A stretch of 64,000 bases of DNA from Salpingoeca rosetta (Eukaryota; Protista; Choanoflagellata): the NCBI GenBank assembly GCA_033442325.1, contig JAWQFM010000022.1, positions 931,926-995,925 on the forward strand, read 5' to 3'. Each line of letters begins with the position of its first letter. Position 1 is the first letter of the stretch. A program made the position numbers and the translations under genes. Below the pieces are notes generated by a model. That model was given only the letters and a program-made list of their open reading frames with translations, did not search any database and was not told where the DNA came from. Of this stretch, positions 3,040 to 17,886 are shown piece by piece.

Positions 3040-10802
<7,763 letters not shown>

Positions 10803-14258: not shown

Positions 14259-14988
14259 GTCGGTCGCCTCAGGCGGGTGGGTGGGTTGCGTGCGCGGACA
14301 AACCACAAACCAAGGCAGCGCGGTCGTTTTTTTGGCTTGTGGTTTGCAGGCAAGAAGCAGCGTGTTTTCGCAAATCCGGATAGTTTATGCTGTCGGTGAA
14401 TGTATGTTCTTGAAGCTCTTACTCCAAATCCTACCGACTCGTCACACGCGCTTCAACGCACTTCAACGCGCTTCAAGGCCGCCTGGACCTGTGACGAACG
14501 CTGTGTCCCTTCTGTTTGCGCGCCACGAAAGAGGAGTGCTCAGCACAGCAGCACAGCAACACGTCGTCGTCATGCCGGTTACATCAGCGCTCGTCAGAGA
14601 GAGAAAAACAACAACGGCTGCGATCACCAGCAGTTTTGTTGTCCTCCAATACAAGTTGCGACGCCACAAACACTGCAAGCAGCAAAGCAGCAAAGCAAGC
14701 AAAGCAGCAAAGCAGCAAAGCAGCAAAGCAGGTGCGTCGCCGTGTGAGTGTTGGAATCCACGGCGGATACGTGTTACATGACCACACTTACTGCTCCAGT
14801 CGGTTTGTCCTCTTCATTGCCCTTTGTGCTGGCTTTCTTCCATCTGTGATCAATCTCACATCCACTTTGACAACACCGTTGAACGTCTTTCCTTCAACAA
14901 ATCCTTCCTATTTCTCCCACTCCAAAGCAAGCCAACGAGCCTTCTCCAAGCAGCTACCAAGGACAAAGGAATCAGGGTAACAGCCACA

Positions 14989-15822
14989 ATGGGAGGCAAG
15001 GATCAGGAGCAAGCCGTTTCGATTGAGATGCCCGAAGTTGGCAAACAACAAAGCGGCAATGCGGGCAGTGCGTCTCAGTCCTCCTCCAGCGGCTGCTTGG
15101 CGGCGCATCCTGTGATTGCAGCCATCGCTGTCATGCTGGTGGTGAGTGCTGCCGTTGCCGTACCCCTTGCCGTCGTTTATGGCAGTGAGGATGACAATGG
15201 CACAGCTGCCGCCAAGGCCTTTCAAGCCTCCGCCTCGCAATGCGCAACTCAGGTGTGTGTGTGTGTGTGCGTATCTACGTGCGCGCACTCCAGCGCCCCC
15301 ATTCCCTTGATAGCTGATGAGCTCATGATGCTTTGACCTTGCTGTCATCCTGTTCCTCCAGTGCTTACTCACCTCAACTGTTGTTTGTTGCGATCTTTGC
15401 GGTGTTCAGTATGTCAGCAACCTGACGGCTTTCGGCACGTGTGTCGTGCAGCTGGGCCATCATGTCAACCTGATGAGCACGACGGATCTCACCGCCTGCG
15501 TGCAGGGCTGTCCCATGGCCAATGCTACATGCCTGTAAGTCCACCACACAGCAAGGGACTCGCTCACCAAACTTGCTTGCTCGCAGGCCCGTGCTTGCAG
15601 GCAAATGAAGCATAGCCCTTGTTCCACAGCGCTTGCCCCACTTCCAGCCACCCCAACCAACACACGTGCACTCACGTACGCCTCTCTCGCGGTACACCAT
15701 AATCTCAGGTCTCGGTGCGCATACATGACCAGCGACTTTGCGGAAACAACCACCACCACCACAGCTACCTCGGCAACAACGGCAGCGACCACAACGGCAA
15801 CAACAACAACAACAGCAGCAGC

Positions 15823-15889
<67 letters not shown>

Positions 15890-15903
15890 GCAGCAGCAGC
15901 AGC

Positions 15904-15953
<50 letters not shown>

Positions 15954-17068
15954 CGCAAGCCTGCCCAACATTGGCAACTCCCACGGCAGAGCTGACGAAT
16001 GGGGATCACATCATGTTCACTGTGATTGGTATCGACACTGGCAACACCATCCGATGCGTTGCGCTGCGGAGCAACCCTGCTGCAATGTACGAGAACCTCA
16101 CGTCGTCCGAGAACGACTTTTGGAGCATCGCGCTCTCAAATGGCACGTACGGGGCTGATTACGCTGCTTTGGAAGCCGCTTCGGAAACAGGAGTTAACGT
16201 CAGCGTAACAACCGGCCAGCTGGACGGCGCATTCACTCACGTGTGCAGCGCGCGCCCCTCTGACAGCACCCAACTGTGCCCACTCATTGCCACAGACCCG
16301 CCTTCCACCGCCCCCTGCTTTCCTGGCTGGGCCGAGGTCATCTTGGAGAGTGGAGAGCGTGTGCAGCTGCGCGACCTCAAGACTGGCGACCATGTGCTGT
16401 GCTTGTCGGCTTCGAACGGCAACAGCCTGGCCTACTGCGACATGAAGACATTCATCAACGTCCAGCACAACAAGACCAGCCCCTTTGTGGAGCTGCACTA
16501 CACGGACAAGGACGGTAACGCCAGTGTGCTCACCTCGACCCCCGACCACTTCATCTTTCGCGCTGGCGAGGATGTGGATGTGTCCAACGCATCCACCACC
16601 AAGCCCGCCGGCGACTTCATATTTGCAGAGGACTTTGTTGTTGGCGACCGCCTTGTGCGCTACGACGACGCCGGCTTTGTGTACACCGTCGCCATCACCA
16701 GCATCACGGAGACGACGTACAATGAGTTCTACTCGCCCGTCACCAACGACGGCTCCACGCTGTTTGTGGACGACGTGTTTGCGTCCTCTTTTGCCTTCCT
16801 CGCATCCGCGGAGGCCCTGCGCAAGCTGAACGCCCCAATCTGGCAGAACGACGACGCCCGCTTCAGCGTGCCCACCCCTGGCAGTGACTTCCCTGTTGGC
16901 CTACACCCATTTGTGGCGGAGCGCGCCCGCCTCATTGTCCAGGCAAACGTCAGCGACAAGACGATTGACTTTGGCGGCCTTCTTGGCTACATTGGCCAGA
17001 AGCTTGCGCAAGGCCACATCTTCTCCGAGCAAGAGATGCTCGACCTCATTCCCACTTACATCAGCTAA
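14989..17068 (+). CDS. Type II membrane protein with Cys-rich region, Thr-rich mucin stalk and C-terminal Hedgehog-type Hint/Hog autoprocessing domain
   Basis: Exons 14989-15252, 15410-15534, 15709-17068 in frame. TM segment VIAAIAVMLVVSAAVAVPLAVVY; poly-Thr ~15746-15953; Hint starts CFPGWAEVILESGERVQLRDLKTGDHV (Cys codon 16316), block B TPDH, C-terminal YSPVTNDGSTLFVDDVFASSF. Confidence 0.9.
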
Positions 17069-17085
17069 CTCTGTGCGTGCGTGCG

Positions 17086-17135
<50 letters not shown>

Positions 17136-17886
17136 TGGGTGTGTGTGGGTGTGTGGGTGTGGGTGTGGGTGTGGCGTCCTTTCATCAGTTTCATCATTCA
17201 TGGAAATGCGTACACCAAAGACCTGCGGCTTGTCTGCTTTCGTACATTTTCAAACTTCCTTCCAGTGCATGTCCACTTGCGCTTCCACCCAGACAATGTA
17301 TTCGCTCTTCCCCAGTTTGCATGCATGCGAACAAGATTGTTCGGTGATGACATGAGTTCTTTGAACCTTTGAGTCATCCTCAGCCTCTGTTGCTGTCTGT
17401 TGTCCCGTTGTGTGCTTCTTTTGTCTCTCCCGTTAACATCAAACACACCACAACTATGGACGCCGCACGACCCCTGCCTGCCTCTGTCACGAACGAGCGT
17501 TTATGCTTGATGAGTGCTGGAGTGAGTGGAGGAGTGGGCCACTTGCATACGCAGTTGTACTCCAGCAGGGAGGACAGAGGGAAAAGGCCACACAGAGCAA
17601 ACAGGGGAACAACAAGAAAGAACAACGATGCACGTGCGCGCATTGCAAAATCACAGGCGAGCACGGACAGCAGGAAAAGCAAGAACATACTTCGCATGGC
17701 GAAACAGGTGGTGCAGCACGCAAATGCAATAGCCGTCCAGACGAACACATGCGAGTACGATGGGCAGGCGGATGAGGTCTTGTGTGAAACAAATAAGCAA
17801 CAAATTGCGCGTTACATGCATGCCAAAGCACTCACATATGCACGAGCAAAGTCACCGACAATAACAACACGACAACATGTGCGCGG

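Follow-up and report, generated by a model that had tools for sequence, protein, structure and literature searches.

A Hog gene of the choanoflagellate Salpingoeca rosetta lies at 14989-17068 on the forward strand of the window analysed here, a stretch of 64,000 nucleotides (C22:931926-995925 of a 55.4-Mb assembly) that is eukaryotic in character, GC-rich and rich in microsatellites. It was the Hog machinery that became the cholesterol-adding module of Hedgehog, and no living group is more closely related to animals than the choanoflagellates. In place of the Gly, Asp and Cys that Hedgehog has before the catalytic Cys, at position 46 and at position 143, the Hog module of this gene (hereafter the window gene) has Pro, Asn and Ser, and comparison across the family indicates that this Pro/Asn/Ser set is an inherited trait of a conserved subfamily rather than a one-off rewiring. 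The module follows an FN3-like domain and a Thr-rich stalk, and the whole is probably tethered to the membrane by its N-terminus. Whether the protein is a type II membrane protein with a self-cleaving Hog module, whose cleavage would not be activated by a sterol, is in our estimate evenly poised.

The third exon of the gene matches the Pfam Hint family PF01079 with an E-value of 3e-23 (83 bits against a cut-off of 29.7), and no exon has a Pfam match to the HH_signal (Hedge) domain at E up to 1, in keeping with the first-pass annotation, which had proposed a Hog protein lacking Hedge. An AlphaFold2 (AF2) model of residues 213-582, computed from an alignment of 70 sequences, has a mean predicted local distance difference test score (pLDDT) of 88.4, and the best Foldseek matches, 1AT0 (E-value 3.9e-12, target TM-score 0.91) and 6TYY, both rank above all inteins. 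Beyond the Hint domain the profile alignment extends to Hedgehog residue 417, with LAPI pairing with LAPM. Because it thereby enters the start of Hedgehog's sterol-recognition region (SRR), we take the 85-aa tail to be the counterpart of that region, an adduct-recognition region (ARR). Its helices are modelled with block-mean pLDDT values of ~82-97, and in the tails of the paralogues called group B below, matches to the Pfam Hint model reach as far as position 207 of 213. HMMER alignments (phmmer and the family profile) to the C-terminal part of Drosophila Hedgehog (Hh-C; 1AT0, 6TYY and 6TD6) give the following position equivalences:

16313-16315, + strand: Pro332 (position -1), preceding Cys1
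16313-16318, + strand: Pro332-Cys333, predicted scissile junction, its Cys aligned to Hh-C Cys1
16316-16318, + strand: Cys333 (Cys1), followed by Phe334; pairs with Cys1-Phe2 of Hh-C
16457-16459, + strand: Asn380 (position 46); pairs with Asp46
16538-16549, + strand: TPDH; pairs with TPAH of Hh-C
16787-16789, + strand: Ser490 (position 143), in motif J, ASSF; pairs with ASCY

These alignments bear out what had been read from the letters in the first-pass annotation, namely an intact Cys1 and TPDH, a Pro-Cys junction, Asn at position 46 and Ser in ASSF. The assignment of Asn to position 46 also holds when its surroundings are considered, as no conserved Asp or His adjoins it; paralogue L003 has Arg in place of the His at +3, which is absent from the homologues P0004-P0006.

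The S. rosetta genome has at least 10 Hint loci, all of one family. Group A comprises the window gene and the paralogues L002, L003 and L004, which are respectively 95, 92 and 77% identical to it over Hint plus tail, and is characterised by x-Pro-Cys-Phe at the junction, F/Y-I-Asn, TPDH and S/Y-S-F. Group B comprises six copies of ~62% identity, with Thr or Ser before the Cys, F-Q-His, TPDH and S-S-F. At the three positions four copies have Pro, Asn and Ser and the six others Thr (or Ser), His and Ser. An exhaustive profile search of 1.84 billion representatives recovered 415 relatives, and the counts below cover 143 domain instances from the best 150 of these 415 proteins, which, being ranked by likeness, form no unbiased census:

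Position 46: His 81, Asp 42, Asn 9, Glu 3, Lys 2, Ala 1, Tyr 1
Position -1: Gly 58 (41%), Ser 14, Ala 8, Pro 6, and others
Position 143: Cys 87, Ser 26, Asn 10, Thr 4, and others

Across these domains Cys1-Phe and His72 are invariant (Cys in 143 of 143) and Thr/Ser69 is kept. The Pro/Asn/Ser triple is confined to group A and to proteins of Salpingoeca infusionum (P0004), Choanoeca flexa (P0006) and Pompholyxophrys punicea (P0005), and Asn46 occurs together with Cys143 in none of the nine domains in which both positions are readable (the publicly annotated Hint product of the window locus, P0001, and eight others). A quick maximum-likelihood tree places the holders of the triple in one clade of 18 (Shimodaira-Hasegawa-like approximate likelihood ratio test, SH-aLRT, 97), which includes two Monosiga brevicollis proteins and has no member with Asp46 or Cys143. 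The view of the first-pass annotation that the catalytic residues had been rewired in this particular gene is therefore not supported in that form: Asn46 is found in four paralogues and in homologues from other species, His is the commonest residue at position 46 in the domains counted, Gly precedes the Cys in only 41% of them, and replacement of the motif J Cys by Ser, Thr or Asp in non-animal Hogs has been published (Burglin 2008, PMC2362128).

Two members of the family deserve separate mention. The P. punicea sequence (EukProt EP00733, from the transcriptome of a rotosphaerid) is a complete open reading frame (ORF) with a signal peptide, an FN3-like domain and a Pro/Asn/Ser Hog module; lying outside the choanoflagellates, it reflects either deep conservation in Opisthokonta or RNA of prey or a contaminant. 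L002 (G000:C19:965844-969593) is a tandem pair, in which the group A copy (Asn46, 95%) stands beside a group B-like copy, PTSG_07446, with His46 and a tail truncated after RFTV.

Pairwise ratios of nonsynonymous to synonymous divergence (dN/dS) are 0.06-0.29 in the Hint domain (0.11-0.29 for the Hint domain of the window gene) and 0.13-0.52 in the tail, where pairs that include the window gene give 0.17-0.41, low values from which we conclude that the module is maintained by purifying selection. Between the window gene and L002/L003, dS is 1.5-2.0 in the FN3-like domain and 0.14-0.27 in Hint and tail. In a sliding comparison with the same two copies, nucleotide identity, 50-75% further upstream, climbs to 88-100% in a 60-nt bin beginning at 16310 and containing the Pro-Cys codons, and it drops to background ~70 nt past the stop codon, the tract of high identity covering 16310-17140. 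By these comparisons the Hog cassette is homogenised among paralogues as a unit that starts at or within ~60 nt of the predicted cleavage site, with the FN3-like cargo diverging; the process seems to be gene conversion. Such a pattern suggests that the module serves as a processing unit that can be interchanged. According to a preprint on Choanoeca flexa, Hint is one of the domains enriched where Ka/Ks between strains exceeds 2, which, as a lead only, fits a fast-evolving cargo. A (GT)n microsatellite occupies 17069-17165, directly after the stop codon and within the homogenised tract.

Over 12,984 bases the window is identical to GL832975.1, which belongs to the publicly annotated assembly GCA_000188695.1, and the nearest named proteins to the window gene are S. 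rosetta PTSG_09162 and PTSG_07446. When three exons on the + strand are joined, script translation yields an open frame of 582 aa. We consider this three-exon model, in which exon 1 is spliced to exons 2 and 3, likely to be correct. Its features are:

14989-15252, + strand: exon 1, with ATG at 14989, phase 0, donor CAG/GTGTGT; tail, transmembrane helix and start of the ectodomain
15253-15409, + strand: intron 1, 157 nt, GT..AG; position and phase the same as in the intron of the C4 paralogue (L011, below)
15410-15534, + strand: exon 2, Cys-rich linker YVSN...CVQGCPMANATC; acceptor TTCAG/, donor CT/GTAAGT
15535-15708, + strand: intron 2, 174 nt, GTAAGT..CAG; the unspliced frame meets TAA inside the donor
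15709-17068, + strand: exon 3, acceptor CTCAG/, a single unbroken frame, stop TAA at 17066-17068
14989-15105, + strand: residues 1-39, hydrophilic, predicted cytosolic tail
15106-15180, + strand: residues 40-64, transmembrane or signal-anchor helix, Kyte-Doolittle 19-residue maximum 2.74
Residues 65-142: linker with six Cys
15746-15955, + strand: residues 143-212, mucin-like stalk of poly-Thr (70 aa, Thr content 78%), coded by an (ACN)n repeat
15956-16315, + strand: residues 213-332, 120-aa FN3-like domain with the closing linker DPPSTAP
16316-16810, + strand: residues 333-497, Hint domain
16811-17065, + strand: residues 498-582, ARR, 85 aa, five predicted helices

Exon 3 thus encodes, in order, a linker (SRCAYMTSDF), the poly-Thr stalk, the FN3-like domain, Hint and the ARR tail, followed by the stop. 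Every element of the layout given in the first-pass annotation (tail, transmembrane helix, Cys-rich part, poly-Thr, a domain of ~115 aa, Hint and tail) is present where it had been placed. The ectodomain of the 582-aa model has 10 N-glycosylation sequons. A shorter (GT)n run at 15253-15272 forms the intron 1 donor and provides a row of alternative GT donors. The poly-Thr stalk is found in all S. rosetta paralogues, its repeats being broken by N runs in L002 and L008. In group B and L004-type copies extra upstream exons encode a signal peptide, Cys-rich modules and a separate first poly-Thr block, so that these proteins would have two Thr stalks. Upstream exons of this kind lie at ~2295-4270 in L014 (G000:C34:381000-388700) and at ~2190-3540 in L013, in which the first poly-Thr is very long.

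Modelled alone with AF2, residues 213-332 form a beta-sandwich with a pLDDT of 94.6. Nearly all of the top 50 matches of VIA-align, a search independent of Foldseek, are FN3 domains, the others including two glycoside-hydrolase chains; the best has a Z of 9.5 (against a background of Z 7-8 for this tool) and an rmsd (root-mean-square deviation) of 2.3 A over 88 aligned residues, and identity to the FN3 chains is 5-15%. No Pfam family, fn3 included, matches the segment at E up to 1, and on this structural modelling the 120-aa domain is FN3-like at the level of the fold only. An FN3-like domain with invariant C34, W56 and C97 also stands immediately before Cys1 in P0004, P0005, P0007, P0018, P0024, P0047 and P0070. 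A feature search of the ESM Atlas with the 120-aa domain gave scores below 0.9 only, to clusters of bacterial AB5 B-subunits, which we took as chance.

The joining of exon 1 to the two exons downstream, and with it the membrane topology, is probable from the open frame, the canonical splice sites and the intron phases of the C4 paralogue L011 (G000:C4:694000-701500, minus strand, ~6061 down to 4651). This paralogue has a transmembrane exon 47% identical to that of the window gene, a Cys exon 36% identical to exon 2 and a poly-Thr exon (~150 aa) that begins with the motif C-A-x-x-T-S-D-F-A common to both genes. Its splice sites agree with those of the window gene in codon position and phase, including the phase-2 second junction, and its second donor contains an in-frame stop, TGA where the window gene has TAA. 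L011 terminates just after the poly-Thr, with no Hog within 4.6 kb; the N-terminal module thus exists alone, which suggests module shuffling, perhaps via the Thr-coding repeat. The motifs flanking intron 2 recur in paralogues L013 and L014, with CxxxCxxxxNxC at the end of the matching exon, and an in-frame splice from exon 2 to exon 3 can be derived in L014 and not in L013. The sole other ATG-initiated frame in exon 3 starts MKHSPC and has no hydrophobic core. Since a protein without exon 1 would have no signal for entry into the endoplasmic reticulum (ER), yet the ectodomain has sequons and conserved Cys, exon 1 most plausibly belongs to the same gene; the homologues with complete ORFs, P0004 and P0005, carry signal peptides. 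Entry of the window protein into the secretory pathway therefore rests on the transmembrane exon, which is backed by the frame and the C4 paralogue and not by junction reads. The membrane-tethered N-terminal fragment of the first-pass annotation is accordingly probable, on the strength of the gene model and not of the RNA.

The reading that we find evenly poised is as follows. The protein would consist of a short cytosolic tail, a signal-anchor helix, a Cys-rich linker, an O-glycosylatable poly-Thr stalk, an FN3-like head and the Hog module. A thioester would form at Pro332-Cys333 and the Hog module would cut itself off in the secretory pathway, leaving an FN3-tipped mucin-like stalk held on the membrane by its N-terminus. 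The residues of the N-to-S acyl shift (Cys1 and the Thr and His of TPDH) are kept, and for this reason thioester formation and self-cleavage are the most likely chemistry. With Asn at the position of the cholesterol activator of Hedgehog, Ser in place of Cys143, and the conserved pairing of the two, the thioester would most likely be resolved without base-activated attack by a sterol, either by water or by a nucleophile needing no activation. Ser143 may take the branched-intermediate role as an oxyester, and the Pro at -1 may serve as a substitute brake.

Mutants of Hedgehog itself provide points of reference. The D303A mutant keeps cleavage induced by dithiothreitol (DTT) and loses cholesterol transfer; D303A, N, R and E all cleave faster with DTT, and the Asp has been proposed to restrain the thioester, and thus wasteful hydrolysis, until sterol is bound (PMC9163320). 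In Sonic Hedgehog of fish and frog, D46A shows no activity with cholesterol at concentrations up to 100 uM, with the thioester kept and thiolysis 2-6 times faster (PMC13738340). Cys143, which makes a branched thioester, is required in Sonic Hedgehog, C143A and C143D being dead (PMC12054796). The first-pass annotation had offered hydrolytic shedding, ligation to a non-sterol nucleophile and a slowed or dead sterol sensor as functional options; the published D46 mutants favour thioester formation without sterol transfer.

Several points weigh against our reading, in its chemistry and in its anchor. Some inteins are blocked in N-terminal cleavage when Pro stands at -1, and Ser at 143 could mean weak or no cleavage, the Cys being required in Sonic Hedgehog. 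Group B paralogues and homologues with readable N-termini have cleavable signal peptides, so that the transmembrane anchor would be unique to the window copy among its Hog relatives. No splice junction was callable from the RNA sampled (~47 million reads over three raw-read runs, plus one contig run), in which four raw reads matched the locus, a result that neither supports nor refutes the model; three reads of run X10 fall cleanly on exon sequence (the last part of exon 1, exon 2 and the first part of exon 3), the fourth matched low-complexity parts only, run X4 has a contig of 175 nt over 14937-15111, and a few reads lie over the 3' end of exon 1. Finally, the public annotation (GCA_000188695.1) has two genes here, one spanning 14989-15995 with a product of 194 aa and one spanning 16085-17068 with a product of 327 aa (4905-5911 and 6001-6984 on L015 coordinates). 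On that account, a small protein with the transmembrane, Cys-rich and repeat segments would be followed by an independent Hint-only protein starting at Met256, and both the missing junction reads and the existence in the C4 paralogue of the N-terminal module without a Hog would be in line with it. We nevertheless hold two separate genes to be quite improbable. The start of the 327-aa product (P0001) falls midway through the FN3-like domain, a conserved segment that is modelled as a single folding unit with the pLDDT given above; the Thr frame is unbroken from the exon 3 acceptor to the stop, and the 194-aa model must leave it for another frame through the repeat in order to end at 15995; poly-Thr, CPT..TP, FN3-like domain and Hint follow one another continuously in every paralogue with an assembled poly-Thr (L002 and L008 have N gaps in the tract); and a Hint-only product would have no ER entry signal. 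Both public gene models at the locus thus look wrong. A brute-force attempt to rebuild the 194-aa model was dropped, as 20 combinations of introns proved equally valid, and a word search with the exon 1 frame gave no matches, missing even the annotated 194-aa product.

Ser can act as a second nucleophile in inteins, which counts against the idea that the Hint-ARR unit stays uncleaved and is retained at the stalk tip in a structural or binding role. Pro at -1, Asn46 and Ser143 do amount to three departures from the Hedgehog catalytic set at once, and C143A and C143D Sonic Hedgehog is unprocessed (PMC12054796); but one would not expect a nucleophile site that is dead to be preserved, and the constancy of Cys1-Phe, His72 and Thr/Ser69 extends to all relatives, the Pro/Asn/Ser subfamily included. 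As D303N, moreover, raises thiol-induced cleavage (PMC9163320), we regard such a pseudo-Hog as unlikely. Another reading is the transfer of a sterol or other lipid to Pro332 in the manner of Hedgehog, with the ARR binding the lipid. The conservation of the ARR (dN/dS 0.17-0.41) and the alignment of its start with that of the Hedgehog SRR would agree with this, as would the His46 of the sister paralogues, given that D46H Hedgehog is active with a wider substrate and sterol range (PMC9163320). Asn, however, is no general base, D46A fails on cholesterol even at 100 uM (PMC13738340), and a protein anchored by its N-terminus would presumably gain little from a second lipid anchor, all of which makes lipid transfer rather improbable. 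A further possibility is that an amine or hydroxyl of the matrix, the theca or a neighbouring cell attacks the Pro332 thioester, cross-linking the FN3-tipped stalk in attached cells. With the Asp brake lost the thioester would form readily, the conserved ARR suggests a bound partner, and a fast-diverging cargo beside a homogenised Hog would suit such a role. No Hog domain is known to use a macromolecular nucleophile, and we judge this covalent attachment quite improbable even though expression of family members is found chiefly in attached (thecate) cells (Fairclough 2013, PMC4054682). It is a comparably long shot, though one worth stating, that the Pro/Asn/Ser subfamily as a whole represents a natural 'base-less' Hog chemistry coupling self-cleavage to a non-sterol outcome, for example ligation of the FN3-like head to matrix, theca or cells, with gene conversion keeping the cassette uniform from the scissile bond onwards as the cargo diversifies. 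Were this true, the base-less Hog genes would constitute a modular system of surface attachment or self-recognition in the closest relatives of animals.

[quoted passage not shown] In the same data PTSG_10584 (Hint) and its neighbour PTSG_10585, which has no domain, show almost identical FPKM, ~85-258 in attached cells and <12 in colonies, and they are probably another Hog gene split by annotation. The pair was considered as the window gene itself and rejected, its neighbour being a zinc-finger gene where the window gene is flanked by an SH2 gene. Among the supplementary files of that study (files 7, 8, 9 and 11), one captioned 'upregulated in colonial cells' has the header log2Fold(Attach/Colony) and lists attached-high genes.

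What is gained here is incremental on a known family and not a new kind of system. Choanoflagellate Hog and Hoglet-like proteins were known, and the 'pre-animal surface autoprocessing system' of the first-pass annotation is the already published Hoglet idea; the new element is a Pro/Asn/Ser variant with FN3-like cargo that is probably transmembrane-anchored. A public annotation that splits the locus is corrected as well. In the Hog domains most similar to this family the cholesterol-activating Asp is a minority state (42 of 143), and together with the Pro/Asn/Ser subfamily this provides natural test cases for Hog function without a general base and without Cys143.

Of the known systems, inteins, which have a C-terminal Asn, a nucleophile in the downstream extein and a C-extein to ligate, differ from the window protein in that its Hint domain is followed by the ARR and a stop, with no C-extein. 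Hogs of red algae, mosses, alveolates, jakobids and other non-metazoans resemble it in having, before the Hog domain, an N-terminal region of no known family, secreted in those proteins and probably entering the secretory pathway here, and a replaced motif J Cys (PMC2362128); that survey includes neither a transmembrane-anchored form nor FN3-like cargo nor the residue at position 46. Hoglet of Monosiga ovata is likewise a choanoflagellate protein with a long Thr-rich stretch (200 residues, as against a stalk of 70 aa with 78% Thr here), a C-terminal Hog and no Hedge domain (Burglin 2008, PMC2362128). It is, however, described as secreted and as having a cellulose-binding-like N-terminal region (Snell et al. 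2006, via PMC2362128; compared by description only), whereas the window protein has an N-terminal transmembrane anchor, an FN3-like domain before the cleavage site and no carbohydrate-binding module detectable by Pfam. PTSG_09162 and PTSG_07446 share poly-Thr, FN3-like domain, Hint and ARR with the window gene (61-64% identity over Hint plus tail) and differ in having His46, Thr or Ser at -1 and, where readable, a cleavable signal peptide and extra Cys-rich exons. Drosophila Hh-C (1AT0, and the D46H mutant 6TYY) has in common with the window Hog the Hint fold, Cys1-Phe, TxxH, the A-S-x-aromatic motif J and the L-A-P start of the extension. Hedgehog is set apart by its Hedge domain, by Gly rather than Pro at -1, Asp rather than Asn at 46 and Cys rather than Ser at 143, and by a tail that is strongly hydrophobic where that of the window protein is amphipathic.

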